In this document: piece after piece, positions 479 through 47,900 of the stretch
How the letters are laid out: the number at the start of each line of letters is the position of its first letter
How positions within the stretch are numbered: position 1 is the stretch's first letter
The notes under the pieces: model-generated
What the model saw: only the letters and a program-made list of their open reading frames with translations
The model's database searches: none
What the model was told of the DNA's origin: nothing
Source: Bugula neritina
Lineage: Eukaryota; Animalia; Bryozoa
NCBI GenBank assembly: GCA_964035545.1
Contig: OZ037765.1
Span: 34,409,504 to 34,473,503 of the forward strand
DNA: 64,000 nt
Reading direction: 5' to 3'
Translations under genes and position numbers: made by a program

Positions 479-3400
479 ATGGGTCAACGTAAATCTCTAC
501 TTCGACCCAGACCTCCACCTCAAACTCCACCTAGACCTCCACCTACACCTCCAGCTCCACTTCCATTTCGACCTCCACTTAGTAAATCTCTACCTCAAGC
601 TACGCCTCCACTTTCTGGTCAGTCTGTGTCAAGTTAGTAAATTATATAAATACAAGTACTTCAACTGCTAACTACAGAAATTTCATACTTTTTTTTATGT
701 GTTATGACATTAAGGTGCAGTAGTGGAGAAGTTGAGGTAGCCTAAGTTCTTTATTGTTCTTAATAAATTATACGTTGAGGTGCAGGTTTATATTCTCACC
801 AGAACATAACTTGTCTCTTACATTTCTTCACTACAGTTTCATTACTTTGCACCTAGCTCTGTGTTGACCATATCTGAGTATTATATTGCTTTTGTTTATT
901 ATGTGATGTTATATACCTGCTTATATTATATACTATAACTATTATACTATAACAGTATAACTATTATACTATAACTATTATACTATAACTATTATACTAT
1001 AACTATTATATTATAACTATTATACTATAACTATTATACTATAACTATTATACTGACTTATATCATATTATATTATATTACATTATATTATATTATATTA
1101 TATTATATTTTATTATATTATATTATATTATATTATAGTGGTGGTCACCTTTCACTGCCGTGTGGCCGGATCAAATCATATTATATTATAGTATAGTATG
1201 TTGTTTTATTATACTGACTTATATTATATTATATAACAAATATTATGCTGACCTATACTATAAAGTGTTATTATTATTTTATGTTATATTGTAGCTATTA
1301 TACTAACCTACATCATGTTATGTTACAATAATTATAGTAACCTTAGTTAACTGTTATATAACATGCACATTTTACTTACCTATATTACATTATATTACAT
1401 TATATTAAATTATTATATATTATTATACTATAAAATATACTGTACAGAGGTATAAACAACATGGCTACCCTTTCAACTGTCAGAATATATCACAGGATGC
1501 ATTTTGAAGTTATAAAATATCCAAGTTTACTTCAATACTGTTTATAGTGTTGAGACACTCTGTTATTTGATATCAAAGTTATTATTTATAAAATGGTGAA
1601 TATTTTGTAGAGAAGTACAAGGTGTGGTTCAACACATCCAGTATAGATGGAGCTGGTTATGGGTGGATGAAGAATGATACTACATCCTACACTATAGAAG
1701 ATATCAATGATATAAGTAGACATCATACAGTGACTCATGTTATACTGGAGAATGACATTCCTCCAAATATCAACAAACTGTTTCCTCATCTCACACATCT
1801 GAGGGTATATGGAGTATACAGCAATGCTGACTGGACCAGGTATTATGTTGTTATAATTTATAACTATATTCATAAGTGAGATATTATCTTGTAGTAGAAT
1901 GTGGAGTAATCTCCCTTCACAATAACACTAGCTTTAGTAACAACTTTTGTATTATTTACCTTATTTATTGTATTTCTATTTATGTTTCAATTTAAAGCAA
2001 GCCAATATGTGATGATTATATATAAGTAAATACTGTCATACCTGTATGTTATGTTACAGCTTATCTTCACTGAAGAATCTTGAGGTGTTGGATATATCAG
2101 AGAATAACCTATCTGAAGGTCTACCTGACAATATATTCATATCCTTACTATCATTGAGAAAGTTGAACATGAAGAGCTGTGAACTGTCAACTCTACCAAA
2201 CAGGTGTGTATTATATTATAGTGTAGAATGATACCAGAATAAATACAATATATAAATATATTATTGAATAATTGTGTAGAAGCTTCTAATATTTTGTGAT
2301 GTACAAAAATTGACTTGTATCAACTAATTACATTATATAAATCATTATACATAATATATGTGATGTCATGTCTTTACTATTCTATTCTATCAGATGTACT
2401 CAGTAAGACATGGTGTGACAACTTGGAACTTTTTACTCTGATAAATATTGGTATATAAAGTTGCTATAATATTATGAAATGCTCATAAGTGACCTCTTAT
2501 GATATTGTTGAGTAGAATGTACAGTATATAGTTCAATTACCTTTCATAATTTTCTACCTGTATGTTATGTTACAGCATATCTTCACTGAAGAATCTTGAG
2601 GTATTGGATATATCAGGGAATTACCTATCTGAAGGTTTACCTGACAATATATTCACATCCTTACTATCATTGAGAGAGTTGAACATGAGTTGGTGTAGAC
2701 TGTCAACTCTACCAAACAGGTGTGTATTATATTATGGTGTAAAAAGATACCAGAATAAATACAATATATAAATATAATATTGAATAATTGTGTAGAAGCT
2801 TCTAATCATTTGTGATGTACATAAATTGACTTGTATCAACTAATTACATTATATAAATCATTATACATAATATATGTGATGTCATGTCTTTACTATTCTA
2901 TTCTATCAGATGTAAGACATGGTGTGACAACTTGGAACTTTATACTCTGATAAATATTGGTATATAAAGTTGCTATAATATTATGAAATGCTCATAAGTG
3001 ACCTCTTATGATATTGTTGAGTAGAATGTACAGTATATATAGTTCAATTACCTTTCATGATTTTCTACCTGTATGTTATGGTACAGCATATCTTCACTGA
3101 AGAACCTTGAGGTATTGAATATATCAGGGAATAACCTATCTGAAGGTCTACCTGACAATATATTCACATCCTTACTATCATTGAGAGAGTTGTACATGAG
3201 TTGGTGTGAACTGTCAACTCTACCAAACAGGTGTGTATTATATCATACATTATGAAGTTATCTGCACTATCTTTATTGAGTCAACTAGACTCTGTGTATA
3301 TTATACATCACAAGTCAATTATTGTATTCTATTCTATTAGATGTACTCAGATAGAAATGGTGTAATAACTTCTCACTTACTCCTCTAATAAATTATTTTG

Positions 3401-6400
3401 CTGTGTAGCAGTTTATATTGGCACCAGGTATAAAATTTGTTATAGTATAAAATTATATCCATATAAGTTAGATCCTCTCTTGTAGCTGAGTGTAATGTGA
3501 AGCTGTTATACATTTCTCTTTCTCTTTGAAATAACCCGAGCCTAGTAGCAACTGCTGTATTATTTATCTGGCTCTTAGTGGTCAGATCAAGAGTTAAATA
3601 AAACTAAATTATTCTTATTCAATAATAATACTTTTATATAGTAAGTCAACTTACTACCTTTTCGTTATGTTACAGCATATCTTCACTGAAGAATCTTGAG
3701 GTATTGAATATATCATGGAATAACCTATCTGAAGGTCTACCTGACAATATATTCACATCCTTACTATCATTGAGAGAGTTGAGCATGGGTTACTGTAAAC
3801 TGTCAACTCTACCAAACAGGTGTGTATTATATTATAGTGTAAAATGATACTGTAAAAAACATAATATATATAAACACAAGGTGAATATATTTGTGTAGAA
3901 ACTTATGACGTAATATTTTACCATAATTAGAGTGACTTATAATATTATAATTATGTCTATTATGAGATATATTACAGTATTATACTGAGATATATTATAA
4001 TGTTATACTGAGATATATTATAATGTTGTACTGCGATATATTATAATGTTATACTGAGATATATTATAATGTTATACTGGGATATATTATAGTATTATAC
4101 TGAGATATACTATAGTATTATACTGAGATATAATATAATATTATACTGAGATATATTATAATGTTATACTGAGGTATATTATAATGTTATACTGAGATAT
4201 ATTATAATACTATACTGAGATATATTATAATGTTATACTGAGATGTATTATAATGTTATACTGAGGTATATTATAATGTTATACTGAGATATATTATAAT
4301 GTTATACTGAGATGTATTATAATGTTATACTGAGGTATATTATAATGTTATACTGAGATATATCATAATGGCAGTCAGTTACTGTGTGATGCATTGTATC
4401 ATTTACCTGCTCCAACTTGCATCAAATACCTGGGAGTATAACTCCTAACAGCTATAAAATCTATACAAAAAGCTATAAATATTATAGCAGAATCCTAAAT
4501 ATTCATTATAATGGTAATCGAGAGCATTTTATATATTCATTATAATGGTATATATTAGAGAGTATATTATAGAATTATATTATTTATTCTCATACCAAAA
4601 CAGTATTTGTATTTCTCTCAGCATACAGAGTCTACAGAGGTTAGAGAAACTGGACATATCATCAAATAAGTTCACCAGTTTACCATCTCCTGTGTACACA
4701 CTGAGTAGTCTGCAGAAGCTGGATATATCATCCAACTACTCCCTGACATCCTTAGATCCTGAGATACTACAGCTAACTCAACTTCGTACACTGGATGTTA
4801 GATATTGTAAAGCTCTCACCTCTCCTCCACAAGAAATATGTAAGAGAGGAGTAGATGCTGTGAGACAATACTACACAGATTTGGCTAAAGGTGCTGGTAG
4901 AAGTCTACCATTTGCTACTATAGCTGTGCTGGGTAATACTATGGCTGGGAAGACCAGTCTAATCAGAACATTACAGAATGCTGACAGAAAGAGAGTTCTG
5001 ACCAACAGAGGGCCAGATGCTGTGAGAGATGAGACAACAAAGGTGTTTAATGTTGAAGAAGTGGAGGTGGATGGTACAGTTCTCCGTGTCATAGATATGG
5101 GAGGCCAGGAGGTCTACCATATTACCTATCAACTGACACTGAGACAGAATTGCATTCCAGTCATAGTAGTCAACATGGAGCAGTATGAGGAGATTTCAAG
5201 TGAATCAACACACAGAGAAGCTTTTAGAAGATTAGCCTTTAATTACATGTCTCACCTCTATCTGGCTAACCCAACTCTGGGTGCTCCAAAACTTATCTTC
5301 ACACATAAAGATAAGTTTCAAAGTACAGAATTTCAGAAGCTTCAAAAGATTTTCCTTGAGACATCCGATCAACTGTGTGAGGAGATGATTAAAGAAGAGA
5401 AAGCATTGGGTGGAGAATTTGCTCAAATCAAACATTTCAGTGAATCAACTGAAGGAGTCTTTCTTGATGAGGACATTTATGAGGTGGGGAAAGATGATAA
5501 GTATGAAGTGTTTGACCTGATCAAGTTGTCTCTTCTTCAAAGCAGTCACCATTTTGTGAAACCTTTACCTTTGGTTTGGGAGGAAGTAAATGAAAAAGTG
5601 CTGTCTATCCCCTCTGTGTACAGCACCTTTGATGAGATACTGAAATACGTGCAAACCGAACTTCGACAAATTGAGTCAAGTCAGCTGGATATAATCCTCA
5701 CATACATGCATGACTGCGGCAAAGTCTTGTGGTATAAAAATATCAGCTCTCTCCGGCCATACATATTCCACAAAATTTCACAAGTCACCAAACTTCTCTG
5801 TGTCTTGTATCATCATGATGCTAACATATGGCAGAGTAGAGTTGACAAGTTCCAGCCATATTTTTCAGAGGATGGGATGCCTGTTGAAAAAGAAGACTTT
5901 GAAAGATTTGTTAATCATTTCACTGAGACTGGTTTGATGGTGCAATGCCTTCTCACTCATCTGGTTAAACAAGAAACACCATTTACTAGTCTGGAAGATG
6001 TAAAAGTTGCTGTTTGCTTGCTCCTCACATTCCGTTTGTTATATGGTCCTTTACCTGGTGATTTCAAGGAGCCCTGTTTTATTGTTCCTCAGTTTGCCAA
6101 CGACCTCTTTGATGCCACTTACTTTTCGCCAAAAAATATGCTTCTTCGAGTTGAAACCCAATTCAATGGCTTAGCGCTACCGCAATATGTCTACCAGCAG
6201 ATGAATGTTGGTTTGCTAGAGTTGTTTTCCGACGAATTTGCTGTGATTAAAGTGAAGAAAAATGGCGCCAATGTCTATCAAGATGGAATCTACACACAGT
6301 TGGTACACGACTACAAATCTAGAAAAGTGTCACTCCACGTGTCATCTAATGCTGCCAACATCAGCAGAATGTGGGAGAGACTCATCACCACCAACAACAA

Positions 6401-9189
6401 TATCCTTAGACATGTTCTACAAACTTGGACAGCGAGTAGACCAGTCACTACATGCTACTGTGCTCACTGTCTTCTGCTAGGACTGCCTTGTCCTAACAAA
6501 GTGCTCAATCCTCCGTGGTGTCTTCGCTCCTTGAAACATTCTACACCAACAAGTCCCAGACTGTGCAGCGGATCTTCAACAACCCTGTGTGGTGATGAGG
6601 AGATACCCAGTGCTCTTCTCTATCCATGTACGTGTAATTTTATTTCAAAAAATAGTTGATTTCTCTGTTGTTTATTTATCAACTTCTATTATTGGAATAA
6701 TTTTTCTGGTAACTGACAGTTTTTCATTCTCCAGGCAGTCCTCTCTCTCCAGAAGAAGCTGATAACATAAAAGAATGTGTCAACAAACTGAGATCTGCAA
6801 GAGAAGAGACTGCTTCAACTGTTTCTGGTATGATCGGTTTTCTATCATAAACTGTTACTGTTAGAAGTAACATTCTTTGCCTGAGCTCAGTCATATGTAA
6901 ACAGCAAAGGACAAGAACTCATGACCCTTAGTTATATAGGCTCTCTGCAAAAGCTCACACACCTTCAATTGTTTTAATTTATTTGTATAATTATTGACAG
7001 AAAAACACTCAAGTATTGATTCTGTTCATTTTTTATAGTCTTTTTGATACTTAGTTTCTGTTACTTAGCACTGAATATATCACCTTTTGTTTTCTTTTAG
7101 AGATAGGTGGAGAAAAGAATTTGTTAACTCAAACTACCTCAGTCCTTGTTGAAAACGACAACATCAGTGAATGCTCTGATATAGAAGAAGAAGGATATGC
7201 TGATTTCACTAAAGATGACCTTGAACCTTTTATATCTCAGGTTGAGGGTATGCAGCTGAAACCTACCAACAATGAACCAGTGAAACAGCTGTTTGACAAC
7301 CACAAACAGGTAAAACAAGTTTTTCGATTTCTTTTTAGATCATTGATTAATATTTTTTTGATATTATGGCTCTTCATCTAATTTCTATTACATTTCATAC
7401 TTGATTTGATTAATCCATTTTCTGTTGTCTACTTTTAGTAATATAAAATTGATTGGTTTGCAGGTTTATAAGATGAGTGACCCTGTTAGAGGTCGTGTCA
7501 TGATCATAAACATTGAGAGATTCTTTAGAGATGATGGCAGTGAACTGACTGAGGCAACCCGAGATGGTTCATACATCGACTATGTTAACATCAAAACTCT
7601 GTTGAAAGACATGGGATTTGTTGTAGCCAATGAAGATGATCCTCTGTTTGACCTGAGTAAACAGGTTACTGTATCATTTTCTTATCTTTTCCTGTAGTTT
7701 ATCCTCCCCAGGCTGTAGCTAGCGGTGATATATAGCAAGTATTTTTACTGCAGAACGGAGGCATTGCATTCCAACAAATCTACAATAATATGTTGTTAAC
7801 TTGTATTCAGGTTGTTTGTTTTTCTCAGTTCTGAGTTTTAGTTTAGAAACAGCAGCACTACTTAATAGTTTATCTTTGTGATAAATATTTCAATATAACT
7901 TTGAAGCAGCTTTGGCTTTGGCGTAGACACATTTACTTATTCAAACTTGTTTTTACACACCATTATATACTTTTATTTTACCAGGAGCTATTATCAGAAG
8001 TGAGGAAGGAGACCACCCACAGAGACCACAAAAATCTTGGCATGTTCATTCTAGTCATCATGTCACATGGAACTTCTGGAAACATCTTCTATGACAAATA
8101 CTGTAAATCTGTCAACTTGTCAGAAGTCAAAGATTTACTCTCAGCTAGTAACTTTCCTGCTATGAGAGGAAAACCCAAACTCATCATCTTCCATGCCTGT
8201 TCTGGCAGTGAGTAATGCAGAGTTGTTCCTCATTTTACTAGAACTAGCAGTTATATTACATAATTCCCTATAACTATAACATCAATTTAAGGAATCATTA
8301 TTTTCAAGATACCTGATGTTATTGGAGTATGCCTATGTGGAAGTGAGCTACACCTCATAACTGGAATCCAATAAACAGTGCTGTGTAATAGAGTTCTGCT
8401 TGTGAATCCAGTCCTAACTTATTACTCACCATCATACCACAGAGTCTACATCTTATGTATTTTATATACAGGCAGAGCTGACTTTGGTAATGCTGCACAG
8501 ACACAAAGCCCAGACACCGTCTCACCACCAACACCAACCCCTCTAACCTCATCTTCTGCAACAGCTGGGAGTGAGTCTTCTGCAGGTCAACATGTGTCTC
8601 CAAATATTCACTTTGATAGATTCACTCACCTAGATGCTGATGACTTCTACATTGTGAAGCCAAGTACAGAAAGTTAGTGAGAAGAAAATTATATTTGAGT
8701 CGACTGAAACTTTTATTTGTGCAAATTAAGATATTTGTTGCATGTAAATAAAATTGTTGCAAATTTTAAATATAAAATAATTTACATCATAATCTGAGAT
8801 TCATATTTAACTACTCAATTTCATGTGTTGCAGCTTACAAGGCTGGTAGGAATGAGAATTATGGTACCTGGTTTATCAGAATACTGGTGGCTACATTCTA
8901 CAGACACAGCTGTCACAGAGATGTTAGTGAGCTGTTTAGGATAGTAAGTACTTCAGTATTACTCTTTGTATGATACTGTGGAGCGTATTGAGTCATCAGC
9001 TTTATATTTCGCTTATATTTATACTTACAGATACAAGACAGAGTTAGACGAGTCAGTATTGCATATTGTAAGAAGACAGGAGATGAAGCAGCTGGTGGTA
9101 ATGTACCTAATTGTCAGGAATGTACTTTCACTCACCTCAGAAAACTTTTCTTTTTTCCAAAGTTTCATGGCAGACAACTCCCACAGTGA
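479..9189 (+). CDS. LRR-Roc-COR (Roco/MFHAS1-like GTPase) fused to a C-terminal caspase (peptidase C14A); 14 coding exons, ~1381 aa
   Basis: Exons: 479-617, 1611-1839, 2060-2203, 2576-2719, 3087-3230, 3676-3819, 4622-6627, 6735-6827, 7101-7309, 7464-7664, 7985-8207, 8472-8672, 8834-8943, 9031-9189. All introns are GT-AG with compatible phases; total 4146 nt, no internal stop. Motifs: LRRs (LKNLEVLDISxNxL); Roco hinge PPQEICKRGVDAVRQY; P-loop GNTMAGKTS; G3 DMGGQ; G4 THKD; COR LTYMHDCGKVLWY. Caspase large subunit YKMSDPVRGRVMIINIERF, RDGSYID, IMSHG, GKPKLIIFHACSG; small subunit GTWFIRIL and LRKLFFFP. The start codon is the least certain element. Confidence 0.88.
928..1137. repeat. Intronic AT-rich minisatellites: (ATACTATAACTATT)n followed by (ATTAT)n
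   Basis: Directly visible tandem units in intron 1 of the Roco-caspase gene. Confidence 0.85.
2030..3850 (+). repeat. Tandem array of four LRR exon+intron units (exon-start spacing 516, 511, 589 bp)
   Basis: Four near-identical 144-nt phase-2/phase-2 exons, each encoding two LRRs. The introns after exons 1 and 2 are almost identical; the third is more diverged. Confidence 0.95.
3960..4370. repeat. ~24-bp minisatellite (TTATACTGAGATATATTATAATG-like)
   Basis: Tandem units in the intron between the LRR exon array and the large Roc-COR exon. Confidence 0.85.
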
Positions 9190-9884
9190 GTGACGTCTGC
9201 AGCACATCACGTGTTCACATGCAGCAGACACAGACCTGCCATATTAGCTAGATACTTGCAGCTGCTAGACAGACCTGTCATGTCTTTGATTTTATGCAAT
9301 CGTTTCTAATTTTTTTAGTTTATATATTTTTCATGTACCTGTGACATTATTTTTATTCTGCTAAGTTTTTTATACAAGCTTTTCAAATTTACCAATTTAT
9401 TTGTAAACAGTTGATAGACGTTATCACATATTGGTGAGCAGTAGCTCTTTCATACTGTAAGACTTGATCAATATCAGCTGGGAGTGGAAAGTCATGCTTC
9501 GACCCCACATTTAAGTTATTAGTGGAATCAGTGGTCACTGTTCCCATTACTGCTTTTTCAGTCTCTTAGCTGCTATAAATAGAGACATGATGGGTTACAC
9601 AAAGGATTTTATGAATATTTATATTACATAATATGTAAAAGTATGATAGTAATAATAGGTAGCTTTTTCTTTGCTATGTACAAGCTATCAAATTATAGCT
9701 GTTGTAGTTAAACACTGACAGAAGGTAGCAGTATTTTAACTTCTGTTGTAACTGAAACCTCAGTGATCAGCCAATCAATATATAGTTGTGGTTTATTGTT
9801 AGTTTGTGGTTTTAATGATTTCTTTTAGTTGCCACTTATGCAGTTTTTATATCAAAAGTGATTGTATGTTTTTATAAATATATA

Positions 9885-10787: not shown

Positions 10788-11225
10788 AAGCAGGAATGCT
10801 GGCGCTGTTACGTCACATTTCCCAGCTCATTTCAAAATCGGCGTTTTGGCTGTTACCAATCTACACCCTCAACTTCAACTAACTTTTTCTACCTTTGGTC
10901 AAATGCTTTTTGTCAATGCATGCTTAGAAAAACACAATATTATGTGTGTTTGACCTAAATGGCCATTTATTAGACAAGATAGAGCAATCCTTTAAGCAAC
11001 AAGCAATAAGTGTTTTAGGAGTTGTATTCCTTTCGAGTAAAAATTTACTTCGCTTCAGCTATGGTTTCAAACCAAAATTCCAGTAATTAAAATATATAGA
11101 AAAATTAAGTGTTTTCAAAAAAAAATTCACGAGTGAAATTTTTTTTAAAACTTGGTTTTTGAACATTTTTAATACGCGAACGGTAGGATAAAAACACTAC
11201 CAAAGCAGTTCCGGCATAAAAAGTC

Positions 11226-14200
11226 ATGGCTACTACCAGTAAAACAACCTCAACTACAATAAATGATACTTGGGCCATTGCTTCCTTTGCAAAGGCGAAT
11301 GAATTTTTGGGATTCTCTTCGTTCGACACTAGCAATGTTATTTTGACAAATAGGCAGTCTATGTCAATATATAAGGTAGTATCTTTCATTTTCTGTATTG
11401 CTAATTTGAAGAGTTTTTATAAATATAATAATTATTAATTATAATATTAATAATAATAATAAAATTAATATTGTTGTACTAGTAGTAGTACAGTACTATT
11501 AGACACTAGTATAAGTATAACTACAACCAGTAGTAGTTATAGTAGTATTAGTACTACTACAACTACTAGTAGTATTACTACTAGTACTAGTACTAAACGC
11601 TAAAACAGTAACCAGTGCCCAGTTTAGAGGCAGCAGACGTTGTAGTAGTACAGGTCCTACCAGTCTACTACTACTAGTACTAGTGGTAGACTGGTAGGAC
11701 TTGTACTTTGACTCGCAGTAAAAGTACTACTTATACGTAGTTACACTTTGACTTTCAGTATTTTTGCCTTTAGTTTTAGTGTTCGTAGTACTAGACCAAC
11801 TACTACTTAATCTAGTTTATTTCTAACAGTAACTGACTAACTCTAGTAACTGGAACTGGTGTGAGTATATCTAAACTAAGATTAGTAAAAACACAACCTT
11901 CAGTTAGTTACTGTAACACTAACTATTAGTTAGAGTCTACTTCATGACTTGTATTTGTACGAATAGTGATAATCACAGTTTGAATAACTCAATAACTAAT
12001 AACTATAGGTATAAGCAAAGCTAAGTTAAAGTGTTTTACTTTTAGTAAAATTAAGTAACAAATCACTATAACTGACTAAGCACTCAGTCAAAGTCATTTA
12101 CGGTCGCTAGAAAGTGAAATGTGCTATAACAGTACAGTCAATTCAGCATAGTGACGCCGAGTCAAGCAGTTATTAATTATTATGATAATGGATGTAAACA
12201 CGCAGGAATTGTTTAAACTTGATTTTGAATTGACTAATTCGTAATAACTATAAGTATTGGATTAAATCAGTTGATACTCGCGTTTTAATTAAGCCTTTCG
12301 GTGAATGGCACTGGGTCCTAATACATATTTAAAGTAAATTTCAGTGATAACTATTGAGTATTGAAATGTGATGACACACATTTACTAACTTAGCCTTTAA
12401 TTACTTTAAAATTTATTTTATTCATACTCGGTCGTTGAGTAATTAGCATAAATCAACCACTGTAGTTCAATTCTAAATCGTACTCAATCACGATAACCTT
12501 TATGTTTTTGCTAAACTAAATCTAAATGGCCTTAAAATTTATGCCATGATGAGTTGTTTGTATCGCTTTTAAAATGATTTTAGAATTTTGCTATCAAGTT
12601 GAGAAAATAAATTTAGTTATTTCAGAGTTTCACCGGCCTGGATGAGTATTCTCTGCAGTACAGCCTCTTTCTCATATAAATCTTTGTGGAATAAATTATT
12701 ACTGAAAGTTAAGGCAATAATAACTTTACATGTGTTTATATGCTTCATTCATGAGAGTAGTTCTCTGTTTAGAATATTATTAAATACTAGAGTTTGAGTT
12801 GTGATAAACTTAGGTGAGTGATCAGCAGACAGTATCAAGTTTTACTCTCAAATCAGAGAGCAGTTTCTGTCTGCCTGTGGTTTATGATCACGAAGAAGAA
12901 CATTATGTTGGTTTGGTTGAGAATCTTGGAAAGAGGAGACTTTGTGTCTGGACAAATGAACTTTCTAACTACAAGGACTGGAAGAAGAAACTGGTAAATC
13001 TCTCACTTTGAGTATTTCAGTTGTTTTGTGATTTATAAGATAATATGTTTACAATAACACAATTTGTTGGTCATTTGGTGAAGTATATTTATAGCATTGG
13101 AAATGTTGAAGTGGTGAGAATAGAATATAGAGAATGATAACCTAATGATGATTGGTTCATAATACAAGTGTAACTGTTGTAGTTATCAACTGAGGTGACT
13201 GAACTGGTAGAAGTAGAGAAGACAGAACCACTGGTGGTCACATCTAATAACTGTGTGTGCTGGTTGTCTCATGTGGAGGACATTTCACGGTCTGTCCATC
13301 TGCTGCCTCCAGATCTGAGAGATGCTGACGTGGAGATTAGTCAGTTTAAAAGTTACAGATGGAGTAATAGAACTGAGATTGTCTACATTGTGACTGTTGA
13401 TGTGAGTATCACAATGTGTCAGTATGGTGTCACAATGTGTCAGTATGGTGTCACAATGTGTCAGTATGATGTCACAATGTGTCAGTATGATGTCACAGTA
13501 ATCAGTATGGTGTCACAATGTGTCAGTATGGTGTCACAATGTGTCAGTATGATGTCACAATGTGTCAGTATGGTGTCAAAGTAGAGTGTCGCAGTAGAGT
13601 GTCACAATAGTCAGTCAGGTGTCACAGTAGAGTGTCACAGTAGAGTGTCACAGTAGAGTGTCACAGTTGTTGACATGCATCATAATCATTGCTGTTGAAA
13701 TATCTACAGTTTCTGTTGTGTTATTTCAGGGACGACACCTTGTATATAAGTTACAGTTCAACGACAAGCAGGTGTTTGGCAAGTCTACGCAGGTGTTTCT
13801 CAACTACACAGATGTGACATCAGTGTGTAGAGTTGTCCCTCACGCTGAGTCTAATTACATTGCTACTAGTGAGTCTGATACTATTGAATATATACTGTGT
13901 CTCTGTATGACGTCACCTTTACAATAACCAGTTTATCTGAAATACTCTATACAGGTGGTAAGGGTGAGATACTATACTCTACCGGTACATCTGAAGAAGT
14001 TATTTCCTCTCTCAACTCACAGTTTTCTACTCAGTGTGTCTCTCTTCACCTACTAGACTCTGACCAGCTTCTCATTGCAACATCTCACAGCTCTACGAAT
14101 ACAGGCTAGTATAGTTTACCTTTTCTGAACATGATTGTTCTAGTAAAGTAGTTCTACTGTAACTGTATGCCTCCTTCACTTGAATATGAGTAGATGTAAG

Positions 14201-17200: not shown

Positions 17201-20200
17201 AAATGTGGCTATTGTAATTATTAAGTAATTTGCTTAGTAATTAACAATAAGTTATCATTTTTAAAAGCAGACGACATTTTAGCAAACAGTCTTTTTCTAC
17301 TTCTCAGATTGATCTTTTGTTTTTCCATGGTCTTATTGCCTTGAGATCGATCTGAGTTCAAGCTCTACAGACCGACCAGCTCAGAATGACTGAGATCGAT
17401 CTTTGACGTCTTTCCATGGAAAGACGTCAAAGATCTATCTCAGCGAGATCGATCTGAGATCGACACATGGAAAGCCGGTGATTAGCTTCCCTTCTTATTA
17501 TCACTTGTATGTAATTACCTTTGTGGTTGGCTACACTTCTTTCTATTGCTTTGTACTAATAATTTTGTGATATATATACTCTTTCAAAAGGCTTTTTGTT
17601 ATGATTAGGTAAGTTGTATTAAGTGAATCTTCCACATCAAAGAGTTTCGGTGAAGCTATCACAGGGATTCAGCTGAAACTCAGTATGGGTCATTTTACTT
17701 AATTTAGTACACACTGAAATCTCCAGTTTTTAGCTATTTTTCAATATTTAGCTGGTAATGAACATGGCTTTTTGCCTAAAACTAGTAAAACACCAATAAA
17801 TACACCGAAACAATTAAGGTTCTTCTTAGTTTTACTTGATTTCTCATGTTTTTGCTTATTCATTTAGCTTATTAGGAGTTCAGACTATTAAGAAAACCGT
17901 AACAGTCTGCAACCGAAAGTAGCTGAATAATTAGGAAGAAACATGGGAAATGAAGCAAAATTAAAAAGAACTTGGCTTATTTAGGTGTATATATTGGTGT
18001 TTTGCTAGTTTTGACCAAAAACCCATGTTCATTAGCAGTTAAATCGTGAAAAATAACTAAAAACTGAAGATATATAGTGTGTACTAAATTAAGTAAAATG
18101 ACCAGTATGGTAAATGTGTGAAAAAGAGTACCGAGTTTCAGTTAATTTCACTTGTCGGAGCACCCGTTATAGTTTTACTAAAACTTGCTTAAATCATATT
18201 GATGCAGAAGCTCACTTTTACCTCATTCACACTTGCTGTACCTTAATGTAAAATATCAGCCATTTTTAATGTTTCTGGGCTAATGTTTTCAAAGTCCGAT
18301 ATTGGGTTCGATCTATGCAACTTCATTGGACAATTAATCCCAATGAGTTGATGCAAAAGTTGTTTTGTCCAATAGGAGCCCACCACAACTTGTTTGAATC
18401 AAGGCTTTTTTTAGTAGGTCGTCTGGTCGGCAGAGTAATAACTTATCATCTAGCTCTGCAAGGATTTTTATTTCTCTTAGACTCTTATTCTCGGGTCAGT
18501 TGGTCAAGTTATTACAAAACAAAAGTTTAGCCGGGTGCCTTCTACAATGCAAAGGCAATTTTCAAGGGTTTCTCTCAACCAAATTGACTTTTTGACTATA
18601 AGTGGCTAAGGTATAAACTCACCTTATGTAAGTTTATGTAACAAGAGCTTTTACTGATAGTTCTAACACTTTATGTCTACTTATTACTAAACACATGATG
18701 CCCCTTAAGAGGGGAAAGAGCTGAGTCTATCTAATCTATGGTTTATACTGCACAGGTTCCTTCTCTCTTCTCCCCCATTGATCAATACTACATCCTCAGT
18801 GTCTGTTGCTAGGTGACGATGTGTTGGTAGGTGATGATGTGTTGTTAGGTGATAATGTGTTGCCAGGTGATGGTGCGTTGTTAGGTGATGATGTGTTGTT
18901 GGGTGATGATGTGTTGCTAGGTGACGGTGCGTTGCTAGGTGACGGTATGTTGCTAGGTGATGATGTGTTGCCAGGTGATGGTGTGTTGCTAGGTGATATA
19001 TTACATTTGTGTTTATATTTCAGAGAGACCCTTCTGAGCAAAGACATAACAGATGTGTATGCTGTAGAAGCTGTTAGGAGGATGGACTTTGACCATGTGC
19101 TGGTTCGTTTATATTACGTCATATACTTACTATATTACGTCATATACTTACTATATTACCTCATATACTCACTATATTACATCATATACTCACTATATTA
19201 CATCATATACTCACTATATTACATCATATACTCACTATATTACGTCATATACTTACTATATTACATTATATACTTACTATATTACATCATATACTCACTA
19301 TATTACCTCATATACTTACTATATCACATCATATACTCACTATATTACGTCATATACTTACTATATTACATCATATACTCACTATATTACGTCATATACT
19401 CACTATATTACGTCATATACTCACTATATTACGTCATATACTCACTATGTTACGTCATATACTTACTATATTACATCATATACTCACTATATTACATCAT
19501 ATACTTACTATATTACCTCATATACTCACTATATTACGTCATATACTCACTATATTACGTCATATACTCATTATATTACGTCATATACTTACTATATTAC
19601 ATCATATACTTACTATATTACATCATATACTTACTATATTACATCATATACTCACTATATTACGTCATATACTCACTATATTACGTCATATATTCACTAT
19701 ATTACGTCATATACTCACTGTATTACGTCATATACTTACTATATTACGTCATATACTCACTATATTACGTCATATACTCACTGTATTACGTCATATACTT
19801 ACTATATTACGTCATATACTCACTATATTACGTCATATACTTACTATATTACGTCATATACTTACTATATTACATCATATACTCACTATGTTACGTCATA
19901 TACTCACTATATTACGTCATATACTCACTATATTACGTCATATACTTACTATATTACGTCATATATTACCACATATAATACATGCAGGTTCTACTGAAAC
20001 ATCTTAACACCCTGCTATCAGATGTGAGAATACCGGATGCTGATTGGATACTGGATGGTGAGAGGATGTGCCGGTGGTGTACCGTCATTCTGGATGCTCA
20101 CTCAACTCAACTCATTCTCTCTAATCAGGCGCAACTTCTGGTCAGCTTGCACGAGAACATCAGACGGCAGGTGAATATCTACCTATAGTATTGTTACGGT

Positions 20201-20806: not shown

Positions 20807-22866
20807 TCAAACAGTTGTAGTTTTACAATAACTCCGCCCTCGGGTTGGTAAATTTGAAGAGGTCAATTCTGGCAATGAGATCTCTGTGAATTTGCTATAC
20901 GAACTTCTGTGAGGGTTTGCAGTTTGAAATTGGAGAGGAGGTGCAATTGTCTCTCCTTCTAGTATGTCACTCTCACTCAGTGCTGTTGGAGTTGTCTCTC
21001 CTTCTAGTATGTTGCTCTCACTCAATGCTGTTAGAGTTGTCTCTCCTTCCAGTATGTTACTCTCACTCAATATTGTTGGAGTTGTCTCCATGTTAGCAAG
21101 GGTTGTCTTCTCACTCTTGGATGAGATTCCCTTTATATTAGAATGTGATTCTGCCCCACATAGCATAGTGAGCTGAGTTGTGTCTCTAACAATAGGAAAT
21201 GCAGGTGACATAGGGAAAGACAACTCTTCAATACCATAGGCACTGCTTCCACTCCGGTTGCGTGATTGGCGCCTGAAAAAGTTACGAATTCGCTCCGACC
21301 TGGATTTATGAGCACTGATTCGAGCGTGCTTTCTCTTGACGCTCTCTTTGTGACGGATTATGAAAAGATAGACTGAGAGAACGCCGGAGATCTCATCGAG
21401 ACAGAAGGCTATGCTCATCATGATAAATGACGACTGGTACTGGTAAGTGAAAGAGGGCCGCTGTAAGTTTGATGATTGGGTCACATGGTTTGCCTCCCCT
21501 GTAACGGCTCCAATGAACAGAACAGAAGCTACCAGCAAGCTTAAACCTAAAAAAAATGTCAGAAACTTTCCGTTTAGTTTTTGTCATGGCCATTATATGT
21601 GTAAGTTACTTGCAGCTAACTCCTCAGAGAATAGAGCATTCAGGTCTAGCAACAATATCTTACCTGATGTTACAAACAGACATCCTGTAATAAACATGAG
21701 GTGTCTTTTTCTACCAACGCAGTAAGCCAGGAGGCAGAGAATGTCTCCTAGAACCTCCATGAAGATACTAGAGAGAGGAAACACCATCATAGTTCGCAAA
21801 CTACCTGCATGCACATGTCAAACAATACATGTATCACTATAGACTACCTGCAAACTACCTGCATGCACATGTCAGACAATGTATCACTACAGACTGCTGG
21901 GAGGAAATTCTATAATATCGTTCCCAGAATACAATGCAATGCTCTGCCAGGACCTCTCTAAATCCCAACATACACTAATTAGTAGTCTGGCTTGAGATAA
22001 AAGTGCATATCAAGAGAACAAAGCTTAGTTAATTCAATAATTACAGAATGCTAATAATAGATAGATGAATAAAGATAATGTAATAAATATCGTATGAATA
22101 TAGATAGATATTAATATAACATCATAGTATACAAGAATAGAGATAATATACATTAATATAAATTACTTATTATAGTTTTAAGGACTGTGTGTCCACTTTG
22201 CCCATCATCTTCCTTTACACTAGCGGCCATGTTGCTATAACATTCAACATCCGTGTAGGCCTTGTCTCCAACATCTGAAATTATACTCTAAATTTTATAA
22301 ACTTTTTTTATTTAAAATTTGAATTTTATGACTAAAAATTAGTATTGTATGTTTACATTTTGTTTTGCTTTTCAATATTCCAACTTATAAATGTCCACAC
22401 TCCTTTCAAAGATGACATACATGCTAATGATAAAATGAAGTTTGCAGAATGTTAGTAGAAAGACAAATAATGTCAATGTTGTTATAGCATAAGTAAAAGG
22501 CAATGGAATAGGCTGTCAAATAATTCCATGCCCTGTAATAGCTGACTTAAGGCAAGTGTTTACATTAAATTACCAGAGGCAGCACTTATCTGGTTTAGTA
22601 GAATATGTAGACATGCATTGAGAACCAAAGTGCCCACCAGTGAACTGTGAGCAGACTCTCCACAGACCCAAGTTAGACAGAGTGTAGACATCAGTCTGGT
22701 TGTATAGTGAGTATATATTGAGGTCACTGATCTCTCCGTCATATCTCTCAGACGTCTGTAGCCAGTGGTCAGTGGATATCGACAGCGTCAGCAGTATCGT
22801 GGATACTCCGGCGCACAGGATTGTAGAGATCATTAGCAACTTCCTCTTCTGGCACGACTCATCCAT
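20807..22866 (-). CDS. TARP/stargazin-like (voltage-gated Ca channel gamma subunit family) 4-TM protein
   Basis: Four exons, approximately 22866-22615, 22274-22167, 21807-21664 and 21546-20807. Motifs: STDHWL; GLWRVC; FPLSSIF...FITGCLFVTSG; YQYQSSFIMMSIAFCLDEISGVLSVYLFI (cf. CACNG YSYGWSF...AE..GVLAVH.FI); RS-rich segment RRQSRNRSGSS; C-terminal class I PDZ ligand KTTTV* (cf. stargazin RRTTPV). Confidence 0.85.
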
Positions 22867-25087: not shown

Positions 25088-28000
25088 ATGACGTACCGTA
25101 CTGTTACTCTGGGTTTTGGGGCCTTTTTCACCGTGGCAGCATTTGTATGCTTGCTAGTGGCGCTGTGCACCAACCAGTGGGTCATCATTCAAGTGGACAG
25201 GTCAGCTGATTCTACGCTGCAGATAGGCTCAACCAGTGCTGCCACTCTTGCTGCCTTCACCAGATACAGAGGCATCTTCAAGGAGTGCTATGATGACAAA
25301 GAGGCCACCAAACCTTGTATGTATGACGTCATATTTGCTATTTTACAATTTCAAGTTATGGGTTTTAACGACAAGCTAGTTGAGGGACTGTGAGTCTATT
25401 TCTACAGAGTGTCTCTAATGAGGTAGGTCCAGTAATGGAGGAATTAGGGAACCCTTTGCTTTAGATAAAAAGTGTAGCAAAAGAAAAGACGTCAACAAAA
25501 ATTCCTGAAGAAAACAAAATACACTTGGGCTAGTTATTGATAATTCTCCATTACTGCACCTAAATGTAAAAATAGTAAAATTACAAGCCAGGAATCAAGT
25601 TTACATGATGCCTCTAAAGTCATTCAGTTCCTGCCTTTACCGTCTCTGTGCCAATAGTGATAAAAAGTGACCAAGTTTTATGGCAGTTCAAGAGTGGGAG
25701 GGGCCTTGTTTAGTGGCGATAGAATCTGGCATTATGCCAATATTCAATGTTGCATCAGTTTTCATTAAAGGCAATTACATACAGTTTTGCTGCTGTTACT
25801 GTTTCCTGTTGGGCGGCCATTTCATAATTAATACAAAGAGAATGACTTTTATACGTTGTAGACGTGAGAGCCAACGACTTTAAAGATGACCTGAATGAAT
25901 GTATATTCAATGACTTCATGGTGAACCGTAGAGTTTCTGTCAACTACACCAGCAACTACAAGACTAGAACAAGTAAACTCTACACTTATACTGTATACGC
26001 ATTGTTTTATTGATATAACCTCACTTAAGACTTCATATCATTAAATATGGCCTTGCAAAGCCTCTTCACTACATACTGTGTCACTCCAGTCAGTCGTCTA
26101 CTATTCACTACATACTGTGTCACTTCAGTCAGTCATCTACTATTCACTACAAGTACATACTGTGTCACTTCAGTCAGTCATCTACTCTTCACTACATACT
26201 GTGTCACTACAGTCAGTTGTCTACTATTCACTACATACTGTGTCACTTCAGTCAGTCAGTCGTCTACTATTCACTACATACTGTGTCACTTCAGTCAGTC
26301 GTCTACTATATATTCACTACATACCGTGTCACTTCAGTCAGTTATCTAATATTCAAGCCGATAGTTCTGAATCCTTCTACTACAATAAACACTGTTTTCT
26401 AACCAATAAAAAGCTGATTTTATGCTTAACATAGTTTTATGTAGAAAAGAAGTATTAATTATTCTCCCATCATTTTACTTCTCAATGTAATAACACTTAT
26501 TCATGAAATAGCAGACCATGTTATATTGGAATCCTAGCTTACCAATCAAGTACATTACCGGGCAGCAAACACCCTGACCTACTGAGTCATACACTGAGTC
26601 AGCACACTGAGTCATACACTGAGTCAGCACACGCTGACACATGACTATTATATTGTAGACCTGCTCATAGCTATGGTGGTGTTCATCTGTCTAGCTCTAC
26701 TCCTCTGTGTCATCGGCTTTATCGTCTTCTGCTACAGCGTCATGCTCAACGAGACTGTCATGACCAGGAAATGGAGTCTCGCGACAAAGTGGGCGGGCAT
26801 TCTCTTATTCACCGCAGGTAGTGTTCTTATCACTAGACAGAGTGCGAGCATAGTATGTGAAGGGCGGACAACCTCGCGTTTGCAGTGTATAGTGCTCCAG
26901 TGTAATATGCTTTCATAAAACTTCTTAAAACTCAGCAATAAATTTGTCGAGTTCATTCAAATCAGGTTAAGCTTACGAGGAATATGATTTGCACTGCTAT
27001 GAATAACATCCCACAATTCTCATTCACCTAACAAATTAGTTGTGGTTATTATATTTAAACTGGTTACTTGCGATTGAAATGATTCTTTTGAGAATGACTG
27101 ATGCTTATAGTTTGTTTGCTGCTTACTTGTTCGTTTGTTTGTAGCATTTAGCACAGCGTTGGGGATGGCTTTCTATCACGGAGCAGAGTACATGGAGACA
27201 GAAGTTATCGATACGGACGGGAATGACGCCCCCTACCCTCTCTTCTTTACTAAAACTCAGCCATCTGTACGTATTACATAGACTCAGCTCTCTGTATGTA
27301 TTACATAGACTCAGCTCTCTGTATGTATTACATAGACTCAGCTCTGTGTATGTATTACATAGACTCAGCTCTCTGTATGTATTACATAGCCCCAGCTCTC
27401 TGTATATATTACATAGACTTAGCTCTCTGTATGTATTACATAGACTCAGCTCTCTGTATGTATTACATAGACTCAGCTCTCTGTATGTATTACATAGACT
27501 CAGCTCTCTGTATGTATTACATAGACTCAGCTCTCTGTATGTATTACATAGACTCAGCTCTCTGTATGTATTACATAGACTCAGCTCTCTGTATATATTA
27601 CATAGACTTAGCTCTCTGTATGTATTACATAGACTCAGCTCTCTGTATGTATTACATATACTCAGCTCTCTGTATGTATTACATAGACTCAGCTCTCTGT
27701 ATGTATTACATAGACTCAGCTCTCTGTATGTATTACATAGACTCAGCTCTCTGTATGTATTACATAGACTCAGCTCTCTGTATGTATTACATAGACTCAG
27801 CTCTCTGTATGTATTACATAGACTCAGCTCTGTGTATGTATTACATAGACTCAGCTCTCTGTATGTATTACATAGCCCCAGCTCTCTGTATGTATTACAT
27901 AGACTCAGCTCTCTGTATGTATTACATAGACTCAGCTCTCTGTATGTATTACATAGACTCAACTCTCTGTATGTATTATTCACCTATATTATATAGTTGG

Positions 28001-29569: not shown

Positions 29570-30585
29570 CTATTTCTGCGCCTGCACACTCGTCTCGATC
29601 TTCTTGAGCGTGTCCTCGAGCACCTGGAGGTCCGTCTGCCCCATACGACTGTACATCTTGGAGAGTTTGGCTGCGGTATGAGACGTGTCCTGCCCCTGCT
29701 TGATCTCTTTGGCCAGCTGCAACTCCAGCTTCTCGATCTCCTTGTAGGGGTCAATGGCGTAATACAGGTCGCTCAAGTTCTCATCAAGGTCGTTCTCCTC
29801 GCGCAGCACAAAGAAGTAGAGCATGAACACCGCCACCGATATCTGCACAATGACATACTGGTACCGCGGGGCCCCCGACTCCGGGGCTCTGAAGGTGTTG
29901 GCCGCTTTCCAGTCTGCCTGACTTCCTGAGAACTTGACTGGCTCGTCTGAATCTGGTTTCTGCTGAGTTGTTCGGCTGGTGCTGAAACTCAACCTGCAAG
30001 GGGAGATAATTCTCTTAGCAAACTACATATAATATAATTATAGTAACTCCTAGTACATGTAGAACTGTAAGCTAGATGTTGATTCAGGAGTGTAATTGGC
30101 TCATATGACTCATATCATATCATCTCATACCAAACTATGATTACCATAGTAACTTTTGGTAAATATTATTTTAATATTTTAAAATTTTGTCTCAAACAAG
30201 AACTGGCAATGCATTTTTTTCAGATGAATACAAAGTTAACTAAAATTAGTGCAACAATCTCGCCAGCTATTGTCAGCCAGCATACAATTTCTTGTATACT
30301 GAAGCTACATTTGCCAGTTTCCTTGTTTTTTTATTAAAAAACTAAATAATCCTTTATGACGAATAACAATCATGAATACATGTAGAATAATTATCAACAT
30401 ATAGATAACTAATAACACAATAATATATTCACTAACCCATATTTAGCTCTTCTTTCGTTTGAGTTCAAGGATAACGATTGTGAGGATAAAGGTTGAAGGC
30501 ATCCACAAAACTGACGGTGCTTGGAAAACGCAGTGAGATTTCTAACAGACTGAATCTGAATGAGACGGAGGGTTTTGAATATCAT
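29570..30585 (-). CDS. UQCC4: UQCC4/CCSMST1 (C16orf91)-like mitochondrial single-TM protein
   Basis: Exons 30585-30437 and 29993-29570 (phase 2). Basic, Ser-rich presequence-like N-terminus; DEPVKFSGSQADW; TM segment ending YFFVLREENDLDE (family LREExDxD motif). Confidence 0.72.
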
Positions 30586-32639: not shown

Positions 32640-33752
32640 TTACTACTTACTTCGATACTTCGACTTTAGCACACGCTAGATCACCATAAGGCGCAAGAGG
32701 CGTGCCTCAGCAGCTTGTTACAATACATTTGACATAGAATTATAACTGTATTTGCATACATTATGCATTTTAAATTTGGCAATTGTAGTACCTTTCAGGT
32801 TATCATTTATCAAGTATTTGGGGAGTTCCAATTCTTAGGTCTCTAATAGTGCGCGGTAGGAAGCTGTTATGATATGCTGTGCACATGGCAGATATCGCAG
32901 TTAGAGGCAGCCCTCGTGGTAACGGTAGCGGTTGATTTGTCCCTTGTCAGTTCAGTGTAGCTGGAAGATAATGCCTGATGACATTCTTCTTTGGACAGGA
33001 TCTTCAAAAGGAGGGTTATTCGTAGGCTTTTGCGACGATCTTCCAGTGATGATATATTGAGTTGTTCTCTTGCATCACTGATGCTAGCCTCCCGGCCTTT
33101 GAGACAGCAGATGAATCTAATAGCTCGGTTCTGGACTAACTCAATTTCTTTCACAAGTTGCTTTGTTACAGGATCCCAAGTGGTTGCAGCGTATTCTAGT
33201 ATAGGTCTGCAGAGAGTCATATATGCCAGCAGCTTTGCTTTCTTGGGAGCTCCATAGAGGGATAGCTTTAGCATGCCAAGAACCTTGTATGCTTTGTTTA
33301 TTTTCTTAGTTATGTGGCTGTGAAACTTGAGGTTAGATTGTAGTGTAACTCCAAGGTGGGTAATCTCATCTACGTAGGGCAATGTTTCTCCCCCTAGTCG
33401 ATATGATGGTAGAATTTGGGGATCTTTGCCAAATGACATGATTCGGCATTTTGAGGAGTTGAACGGCATCTTCCACTTCAGAGACCAATTCTCAATCTGT
33501 TCAATATTCTTTTGGAATTTTCGAACATCATCTAGGGAGTCCACCTCTTGAAAAATCAGTGTGTCATCAGCAAATAAACTGACACTGCAACTTAGTAGAT
33601 CAGGGAGATCATTGATGTAAAGAAGGAATAGGGTGGGCCCCAGGACAGAGCCCTGTGGAACGCCAGAAAAGACTGGTAATCTACCAGAAGAGTGGCCATC
33701 TATGATTACTTGCTGCTCTCGATTTGTCAAAAAATTCTGGAGCCATATATTA
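32640..33752 (-). mobile_element. 5'-truncated non-LTR retrotransposon (CR1/L2-like LINE): C-terminal half of reverse transcriptase plus 3' UTR
   Basis: WLQNFLTNREQ...SGVPQGSVLGPTLFLLYINDL...LFADDT...W.MPFNSSKC...LGV...RPILEYA..W. The terminal HNSFLPRTIRDL motif continues in another frame (frameshift near 32880). Simple-repeat tail near 32640. Confidence 0.9.
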
Positions 33753-44992: not shown

Positions 44993-47900
44993 CTATTGAT
45001 TATCATCATCATGGTAAGCATATATCAACTCTTTCTTGTCGACTTCCTCATTGGAGATGTAAGGTTTCACTTGGCGCCAGTCTTCTGTTGTCGTGGCACT
45101 TATTTTGTCCAGATATGCTTTAAGACGAGAGAAGCCATCTTCTAGCAGCTGGTTTTGTTTTGTAATGGCCTTTATTAGCTGTAGGTTCATATTTACAGGG
45201 TGCACGGGATCCATACCATCGTATGAGGAGTTGTCATCTTCTAACTCTTTCTTTAGCCTTGTCTCGTTGCCAAGGTAACGCTTGTGTATCCAATATGGTG
45301 GCATGTAGTGAGGCATATAGTAGTTATACTCATAGGGGTAACTCTTGTACTGGTAAGGAGGCCACCTTGGCATGCCATACAAACCACCAAACCTACAAGT
45401 TAACAACTGCCCATGAATGTGTAAAGCAGTGAAGAGTTGAAGGCATCCAGTGACATATGCAAGTAAAGGACGTATCGATCTTTCTCTTGGCAGTTTACAA
45501 TAAAACTAGAAGCCAGCTTTCATTTAGTTAGGGTTTTGGTATACAACAATCTGTGAATTAAACTCTTAGTGTATTAAAATATTTGTAACCAACCATAGAA
45601 TATGCAGCAAGCAATTATAAACACTCTGTGTCATAAATCAGTGCAACATATTTGTTTTATTGTATTTCACATCAACATGGGCCCTTACCACCACCCCCCC
45701 CCCCCCCCCCGTGTCATGTTGTGGGTAACTCACTGTGGCAAGTATTTAGGGACTTCCTTTTTTCCTGAAAGTGAGTGTGACATGTGACTGTCAGGTGGCA
45801 CGTCTGCTGAGTGTGACATGTGACTGGCAGGTGGCACGTCTGCTGAGTGTGACATGTGACTGGCAGGTGGCATGTCTGCTGAGTGTGACATGTGACTGTC
45901 AGGTGGCACGTCTGCTGAGTGTGACATGTGACCGTCAGGTGGCACGTCTGCTGAGTGTGACATGTGACTGCCAGGTGACATGTCTGCTGATGGCAACTGA
46001 TGTGAGGGCACATTGTATAGCCTGTGATTATCAACTAGGGTTGGGTGGTTCAAAGGCTGCCCATCCTCACCTTCTGCAAGACATAAAATCACTTGCTAAT
46101 AGTTGTCAACTACATATGCTATACATATAATAAAGCTAGTAAACAAGGTATGCAGAGCACCTGCGTGTAGAGTCGAGTCTGACTCTGAATTCACTTGTAT
46201 GTCAGACACTAAGGGTGCCGGCGGATCAAGTGGATACCCAGAATCTGAGTTGACATCAGTGTGATGAGATGAAGAGTGAATACTGGTGGCTAGCCCTAGA
46301 ACATAGAGTCAAGTCATCATCAAGGTAGGGGGAGTCAGAAACCACACAGTAACTTGTAAATAATCTCAGAATATTTAATTTTTCAAGAAAGACAACTAAG
46401 GAAATTTGAATTGTAGAAGAATAGCTGCAGCATGCAAATGTCTACTCAGAATATTAGAGAAGTAGAATAAGTATCACATAATATACACTACATAATAGTA
46501 CATCATATATTACATAATAGTACATCATATATTACATAATAGTACATCATATATTACATAATAGTACATCATATATTACATAATAGTACATCATATATTA
46601 CATAATAGTACATCATATATTACATAATAGTACATCATATATTACATAATAGTACATCATATATTACATAATATTACATCATATATTACATAATAGTATA
46701 CCATATATTACATAATAGTACATCATATATTACATTATAGTATATCATATATTACATAATAGTACATTGTATATTACATAATAGTATATCATATATTACA
46801 TAATATTACATCATATATTACATAATAGTATACCATATATTACATAATAGTACATCATATATTACATTATAGTATATCATATATTACATAATAGTACATT
46901 GTATATTACATTATAGTATATCATATATTACATAATAGTACATTGTATTAGTACATTGTATATTACATAATAGTATATCATATATTACATAATATTACAT
47001 CATATATTACATAATAGTACATCATATATTACATTATAGTACATCATATATTACATAATAGTACATCATATATTACATAATAGTACATCATATATTACAT
47101 AATAGTACATCATATATTACATAATAGTACATCATATATTACATAATAGTACATCATATATTACATAATATTACATCATATATTACATAATAGTATACCA
47201 TATATTACATAATAGTATATCATATATTACATAATAGTACATTGTATATTACATAATAGTATATCATATATTACATAATATTACATCATATATTACATTA
47301 TAGTACATCATATATTACATAATAGTACATCATACATTACATAATAGTATATCATATATTACATAATATTACATCATATATTACATAATATATACCACCA
47401 ACTCACTGGTAAACCGAAGAGAGTATTTAGTGTACCCATTGCCAACTCCATGATTACAGTCTACCTCTGGAGTCTCCTCTAGCGAAGATTTGCTAGCAAC
47501 TGTAAGATTATACACAGCCACTGTGAGCAAGCAGAGCTGACTCTACTTTGTAAGACATTGACTGTACCACAAAAAATACCTACAGTCACTGATTCATAGG
47601 AAAACTTTTTCACGTCTCAGAAATTATTCCATCAATCAAAAAATTTAAGTAACCACTAAATCTGTGCGTCACTCTGATTGGCTCAATACACTGTAGTGAG
47701 TCACGTTAGAGACCGTCACTCTGATTGGCTCAATACACGGTAGTGAGTCATGTTAGAGTCATACTCATGTTGACAGCATGGCCAGACATGTCATACTCCC
47801 CGTCTCTAGAGAGGACAAGACACTGCAGCTGACTTCTACTTCCTGCCGGCAACCTGGACAGACAGACATGACAAACTGTGATGCATTATAATATATGATA

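Follow-up and report, generated by a model that had tools for sequence, protein, structure and literature searches.

In the NLR inflammasome and the Apaf-1 apoptosome, a sensor and a nucleotide switch control an initiator caspase that is activated by proximity. Those systems use a STAND ATPase, a separate caspase, and death-fold adaptors, none of which is found in the gene described here. This gene occupies positions 479 to 9189 of the forward strand of a 64,000-nucleotide stretch of Bugula neritina DNA (contig OZ037765.1, positions 34,409,504 to 34,473,503; the whole stretch is called the window), and it encodes leucine-rich repeats (LRRs), a Roc GTPase, a COR domain, an acidic tether, and a caspase with its His/Cys dyad, in that order and in a single reading frame.

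The same domain order has been predicted, but only predicted, for bacterial LRR-AP-GTPase-COR proteins, which carry at least 24 C-terminal effectors including a caspase (Kaur et al. 2021, PMC8195603). These LRR-AP-GTPase(Roc)-COR-effector proteins also resemble the bryozoan gene in having variable N-terminal LRRs and several paralogs per genome. Conversely, the bryozoan Roc-COR region is only 24 to 27% identical to its bacterial-type matches, and a quick tree, which carried long-branch warnings and did not include vertebrate MFHAS1, placed long branches between the bryozoan clade and the bacterial rows, which held no bacterial Roc-COR-caspase sequence. Because the caspase is of metazoan type and the Roc-COR identity is so low, the bryozoan fusion is likely to be independent of the bacterial one.

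Two animal precedents were compared by description only. In Owenia fusiformis, one caspase has a ROC pro-domain that was reported to be species specific (Krasovec et al. 2024, PMC11463336). It is likewise an animal caspase with ROC in place of CARD or DED, but that paper mentions no LRR or COR, gives no function, and does not mention bryozoans. The amphioxus LRR-caspase proteins, suggested to link recognition to apoptosis by a short route (Zhang et al. 2008, PMC2575513), also carry LRRs and a caspase, its active-site motif intact, on a single chain, but no GTPase is mentioned. The brown algal ROCO candidate immune receptors undergo LRR exon shuffling and diversifying selection (PMC3341825); they too form an expanded LRR-Roc-COR family with repeat-encoding exons, with one repeat per exon compared to two per 144-bp exon here, and caspases are not mentioned in that paper. 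The nearest relatives of the bryozoan clade are MFHAS1 and the invertebrate LRR-Roc-COR-CARD/Death proteins, which share its LRR-Roc-COR core. MFHAS1-type proteins end in nothing, CARD, Death, or GT4, whereas the bryozoan gene has caspase exons spliced on.

The preliminary description of this locus had held that no characterized animal protein has this architecture. That statement stood up in our literature searches, which yielded neither a study of this bryozoan family nor a test of any such fusion, most subscription papers being outside the search. The bacterial prediction and the animal ROC-caspase and LRR-caspase precedents mean, though, that the design is not categorically new. What is new, judging from sequence comparisons, is that caspase modules appear to have been swapped between paralogs and that the nearest outside relatives end in CARD or Death.

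Gene structure

The gene lies in the first 9.2 kb of the window and has the setting of an AT-rich, intron-containing animal gene. All of its introns have GT-AG ends and matching phases. Local translation of the joined exons gave an open frame from the ATG at 479 to the TGA at 9187-9189 with no internal stop, and a product of 1381 amino acids with the exon 1 donor at 617 or 1386 with the donor at 632. These features, together with the motifs and Pfam matches given below, confirmed the previously described chain of 14 exons joining LRRs, Roc, COR, an acidic linker, and caspase. The exons, all on the plus strand, are as follows.

479 to 632, +: exon 1 (coding part), starts MGQRKS and has a proline-rich stretch; the donor at 617 is also in frame
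1611 to 1839, +: exon 2, caps the LRR array at its N-terminal end; homologs of this exon occur in L003, L004, L009, L011, and Watersipora proteins; no Pfam match
2060 to 2203, +: exon 3, LRR cassette of 144 bp, phase 2-2, two 24-residue repeats
2576 to 2719, +: exon 4, LRR cassette; introns 3 and 4 are 97% alike
3087 to 3230, +: exon 5, LRR cassette
3676 to 3819, +: exon 6, LRR cassette; RNA joints cassette to cassette and 3819/4622
4622 to 6627, +: exon 7, last LRRs to about 4890, Roc at about 4896 to 5552, COR-A/COR-B to 6627 (Pfam, PDB profile matches to Roco proteins, AlphaFold, Foldseek)
6735 to 6827, +: exon 8, probable helix after COR, as in the paralog model; RNA joint 6627/6735 in three runs
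7101 to 7309, +: exon 9, acidic tether, probably disordered, with ECSD at 7169-7180 (RNA joints, family motif, paralog model)
7464 to 7664, +: exon 10, start of the caspase large subunit, S1-pocket Arg at 7560 (Peptidase_C14, E 0.0012; RNA joints; paralog aligns with caspase-3 RSGTD)
7985 to 8207, +: exon 11, catalytic His at 8066 and Cys at 8198 in HACSG (Peptidase_C14, E 2.8e-10; PDB caspases, E about 1e-6)
8472 to 8672, +: exon 12, Ser/Thr/Pro-rich inter-subunit linker and start of the small subunit; low predicted local confidence (pLDDT) in the matching paralog stretch
8834 to 8943, +: exon 13, small subunit with the second S1-pocket Arg, 8848 (RNA joint 8672/8834; caspase-3 WRNSKDGSWF aligned in the paralog; unchanged in L001 and L010)
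9031 to 9189, +: exon 14, end of the small subunit with its dimer-interface strand, then the stop; RNA contigs start at 9031

L001 to L012 are related loci. One of them, the close paralog L011, keeps the ATG region and the donor at 632 but not the one at 617, so 632 is the likelier exon 1 donor. Since in-frame stops also lie just 5' of the ATG, at 428 and 434, translation likely starts at 479. Neither an AATAAA nor an ATTAAA signal was found within 1 kb 3' of the stop. In intron 1, positions 711-830 hold a short dispersed repeat that recurs in two introns of L010.

Pfam was scanned exon by exon, and the other searches were also made with single exons; the full-length Watersipora proteins P0071, P0098, and P0204 were used as stand-ins for the caspase searches, as well as for the fold of COR plus caspase. 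In exon 7, Roc scored 31.4 bits (cut-off, 27 bits) and COR-A matched weakly (E 0.025). Pfam also matched LRRs, and Peptidase_C14 on exons 10 and 11. The diagnostic motifs lie at 4932 (GNTMAGKTS), 5094 (DMGGQ), 5301 (THKD), 8063 (SHG), and 8192 (HACSG). No kinase domain was matched in the gene or the full-length paralogs. The earlier statement that there is no CARD, DED, or death-domain prodomain was also borne out: Pfam found none on the scanned exons or the full-length paralogs, and no death-fold bundle lies between COR and caspase in the P0204 model. The gene does not qualify as a NACHT or NB-ARC ATPase, its switch being a Ras-like GTPase. By sequence and fold, then, it is both a Roco gene and a caspase gene, and it lacks the defining architecture of an NLR, a classical initiator caspase, an LRRK or DAPK1, or MFHAS1.

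Splicing of COR to the caspase

RNA-type contigs from four runs of four studies (the RNA label of the runs was guessed) were aligned to positions 3600-9450, a range that begins 3' of exons 1 to 5. The three joints for which transcript support had been sought, 6627/6735, 6827/7101, and 7309/7464, were found in three, one, and three runs, respectively, and the single instance of 6827/7101 carries two substitutions that match the paralog L001. Joints 3819/4622 (two runs), 7664/7985 (three), 8207/8472 (four), and 8672/8834 (three) were also present, so that the supported joints span exon 6 to exon 13; joint 8943/9031 was absent from the contig rows shown. The contigs are short and 88 to 99% alike, come partly from paralogs or alleles, and in none of the four runs span the whole gene. 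Because the three joints between COR and caspase occur in RNA contigs, these results demonstrate that COR, linker, and caspase are spliced as one chain in this subfamily, and that the gene is expressed at the family level. From them we infer that this very copy yields a full-length message; a truncated form that stops at the exon 7 read-through stop, 6659, may be made as a minor product.

The contigs also contained joints 3819/4665 and 6833/7150 and several cassette variants (3676-4665, 6827-7150), which may reflect alternative acceptors or other paralogs. A loose RNA end at 6629 matches the other of the linker types found among the paralogs.

The Roc-COR switch and the tethered caspase

The G1, G3, and G4 motifs of Roc (GNTMAGKT, DMGG, and THKD) are present in the window gene and near-invariant across 21 homologs. 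AlphaFold modeled the window Roc-COR with a pLDDT of 87 and a predicted template modeling score (pTM) of 0.85, and the top 35 Foldseek matches to this model were all Roco proteins. The model matched the full Roc-COR of LRRK2, LRRK1, and CtRoco (Z of about 20 to 23); in VIA-align, the comparison with LRRK2 gave a Z of 22.7 and a root mean square deviation of 3.8 over 447 residues. On these models, a COR domain directly follows Roc. An invariant CxxC lies at 6459-6470, and the family conserves more Cys where COR-B ends, with CPHC in outside relatives; these Cys form a candidate zinc site.

In the model of the paralog P0204, built from Roc to the end, Roc-COR is followed by one helix, by about 50 disordered residues, and then by a caspase fold. 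Foldseek matched this model to CED-3 and to caspase-9, -3, and -8, and the full caspase domain in the paralogs was recognized at an E of 1e-36. From its matches to caspase-3, caspase-9, and CED-3, the protease is a metazoan-type caspase. A caspase-2-like subtype was not borne out, caspase-3, CED-3, caspase-9, and caspase-8 falling within about 11 bits of each other.

In the window copy, the catalytic His and Cys and both S1 arginines (7560 and 8848) are retained, and SHG and HACSG align with caspase-3 SHG and QACRG. The S1-pocket Gln is replaced by His (QACxG is HACSG here), with the two S1 Arg kept. The tether carries a motif, SD[LV]SD, that is conserved across the family and reads ECSD here; its xxSD is a candidate self-cleavage site, and exon 12 holds a second candidate, QSPD, with its Asp at 8513. 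The paralogs L003 (13791-14833) and L011 (13270-14060) have ETCSG or EVCSG and Ile for the second S1 Arg, and their caspases are possibly altered in specificity or inactive.

A large bryozoan family

The gene does not stand alone: it is one member of a large family, with about 40 relatives of exon 7 at 27 to 89% identity. Caspase exons followed downstream, in the same order, in all eight of the related clade genes that were fetched (L001, L003, L004, L010, and L011, all from one JGI sample; L005; and Watersipora L002 and L009; L012 is L011 in a second sample). COR and caspase occur on a single chain in ten Watersipora subatra models (e.g., XP_067947674.1, 1419 amino acids) and two Bugula neritina models. 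Watersipora L002 (10001-36333) is annotated as two genes with 121 bp between them, but its frame stays open over the same introns in the same phases (1, 1, and 0). In the databases, family members are named MFHAS1 homolog, CASP8, or uncharacterized and are often split in two; the models of L002 and L009, named MFHAS1 homologs, are split or cut between COR and caspase. In the tree, a long branch led to a single group of 53 rows with good support, and the window gene fell among 22 JGI rows that make their own expansion. The family is thus large, with dozens of dispersed paralogs, and conserved across bryozoans.

The nearest relatives outside the clade, including those of Lingula and Branchiostoma, end in CARD, Death, or a conflict-type glycosyltransferase, and no caspase was found in the outside LRR-Roc-COR relatives that were scanned. 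This suggests that the caspase replaced an adaptor domain. For the outgroup loci L006 and L008, the DNA 3' of COR is too short to judge the effector. The Owenia Roco P0183 has no caspase. Searches for long caspase proteins outside bryozoans, which were insensitive (the first missed P0098), returned only Watersipora members and one ankyrin-caspase. No ESM Atlas cluster had both Roc and Peptidase_C14, the best being a cyanobacterial COR-CHAT cluster (0.86), a lead only. Other effectors occur on the same chassis: P0169 (Branchiostoma belcheri) and P0166 have LRR-Roc-COR plus GT4-conflict, or HEPN plus LRR-Roc-COR-CARD.

Diversified repeats and probable exchange of caspase modules

Compared to the paralog L001, the ratio of nonsynonymous to synonymous substitution rates was 0.16 for Roc, 0.15 for COR, and 0.22 for the caspase core, demonstrating that all three are under purifying selection. 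Among the LRR cassettes, amino-acid change was found in 8 of 12 exposed codons of the LxxLxLxxN motif versus 2 of 35 framework codons (p 6e-5), and at the exposed sites the nonsynonymous proportion was 0.27 versus a synonymous proportion of 0.08, with exposed sites taken post hoc from the LRR consensus and four non-independent cassettes compared. The likeness of introns 3 and 4 points to recent tandem duplication, and the cassettes number four in the window gene, five in L011, and at least six in L010. Receptor-like evolution, with diversified LRR cassettes and a conserved switch and protease, is supported by these comparisons.

The paralogs group differently on the two sides of the intron after COR. 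When window positions 6627-9189 were compared with L011:11764-14669, L004, and L003, the Roc-COR of the window gene paired with that of L011 (80% identity; 113 shared sites versus 29 and 30). In caspase exon 11, L011 instead paired with L004 and L003 (74 to 77% versus 45%; 26 sites versus 2 and 2), as it did in caspase exon 13 (18 sites versus 0 and 1). On this evidence, the two halves of the gene have different histories. Because Roc-COR and the caspase exons group the paralogs differently, the simplest reading is that a linker-plus-caspase module was exchanged between paralogs at this intron. Four active-site types, HACSG, QACSG, ETCSG, and EVCSG, occur across the modules.

Proposed mechanism and alternatives

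Caspases need dimers to work, and initiator caspases are activated by proximity. The combination of a diversifying sensor with a switch and a loosely tethered caspase that are both conserved points to activation of this kind. We propose, with a probability of roughly 0.55, that the gene encodes a single-chain intracellular immune or damage receptor in which clustering of Roc-COR activates the tethered caspase. At rest, the chain would be a monomer at cellular GTP levels, possibly held at a membrane by its N terminus, with its caspase an inactive monomer. A ligand on the exposed LRR face would cluster chains and promote GTP hydrolysis, and the GDP-state Roc-COR dimer would then join two tethered caspases, which would dimerize and become active. 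Cleavage after Asp, both in the inter-subunit linker and at the xxSD site conserved in the tether, would produce a matured, released protease that might kill the cell or process defense substrates. The fusion would stand in for the CARD or Death adaptor found at the same position in the nearest relatives.

That the GTPase switch dimerizes the attached caspase had already been suggested in the preliminary description. The direction of such a switch differs from that of CtRoco, which is a dimer when empty or GDP bound and a monomer with GTP (PMC5714945). Because GTP makes monomers in this best-studied Roco protein, activation is by analogy more likely to follow hydrolysis. In a model for LRRK2, cytosolic GTP-bound monomers hydrolyze GTP and dimerize at membranes, where activity is higher (PMC6337361). 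Dimerization in the GDP state is favored here because it fits both Roco and caspase biochemistry. Whether Roc-COR dimerization turns activity on or off is debated for LRRK2 and other Roco proteins, and since a caspase needs dimers to work, the fusion would be a direct and easily assayed reporter of the state of Roc-COR. If the proposal is true, animals have a route from recognition to cell death via a GTPase, without an adaptor. The gene also points to an extensive receptor family, so far unstudied, in a phylum about whose immunity little is known. More tentatively, the whole family may be a modular Roco receptor repertoire, in which LRR cassettes diversify recognition, caspase modules that differ in active site are swapped at the intron following COR, and the GTP/GDP dimer switch lets every chain activate its own caspase, with neither an adaptor nor a STAND ATPase.

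Several observations weigh against the proposed receptor. Just before the catalytic AC, His in this copy and Glu in other paralogs replace a conserved Gln, so that neither protease activity nor Asp specificity is assured on sequence. The LRR comparison has the post hoc, non-independent basis stated above. In CtRoco, a nanobody on the concave LRR face promotes an open monomer (PMC11052575), so this LRR-face binder acts opposite to ligand-driven dimerization. Finally, the MGQRKS start (Gly2/Ser6) fits an N-myristoylation-type pattern that is also seen in three Watersipora paralogs (background, 0.5%), but a general myristoylation signal for the family was rejected, L011 starting with MSEHKS.

An alternative is a switch of the opposite direction, in which a resting GDP-bound or empty dimer, with its LRRs folded on COR, keeps the caspases apart or occluded. 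Opening by ligand and GTP would then let the caspase cut itself free or assemble into a higher oligomer. The closed CtRoco dimer, its GTP-driven opening aided by an LRR-face binder, and the conserved candidate cleavage motif in the tether are all in favor of this alternative. A disordered tether of 50 residues would nevertheless be a poor restraint on the caspase in a resting dimer, and the caspase needs dimers to act, so we regard this arrangement as unlikely, if worth retaining.

The same biochemistry could serve allorecognition or development (colony-contact reactions or polypide regression) and not pathogen sensing. Bryozoans are colonial and show allo-incompatibility (PMC8195603), and family transcripts occurred in four RNA studies with no known challenge; however, dozens of dispersed paralogs and turnover of LRR cassettes are more in keeping with an arms race than with one histocompatibility locus, and we hold such a role to be rather improbable.

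It is quite improbable that this copy's caspase has little or no proteolytic activity and serves as a scaffold to recruit or tune other caspases, as cFLIP does. The change of QACxG to HACSG here and to E[TV]CSG in L003, L004, and L011, with loss of the second S1 Arg in L003 and L011, is what would be expected of a scaffold, but the His, Cys, and both S1 arginines of the window copy and the purifying selection on the caspase exons are not. That an MFHAS1-like Roco gene with its end at 6659 was wrongly joined to a neighboring, separate caspase gene would account for the read-through stop, some database models split at the COR/caspase point, and the lack of a single contig spanning the gene, but it is very hard to reconcile with the three spliced joints between COR and caspase, the open frame of the split Watersipora gene, and the ten single-chain models.

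Other features of the window

Beyond the gene, the window contains the following.

36028-38300, +: exons of an MRE11 gene (Pfam Mre11_DNA_bind)
29570-29992, -: CCSMST1-family gene
32867-33730, -: reverse transcriptase fragment of an element resembling long interspersed nuclear elements (LINEs)
20807-21538, 11105-11389, and 44993-45406, -: exon-like open reading frames of other genes, with no Pfam match, the first two with membrane-helix-like stretches
940-1140, 3960-4370, 19000-20000, and 27100-28000: long AT-rich minisatellite arrays that give spurious repetitive open reading frames

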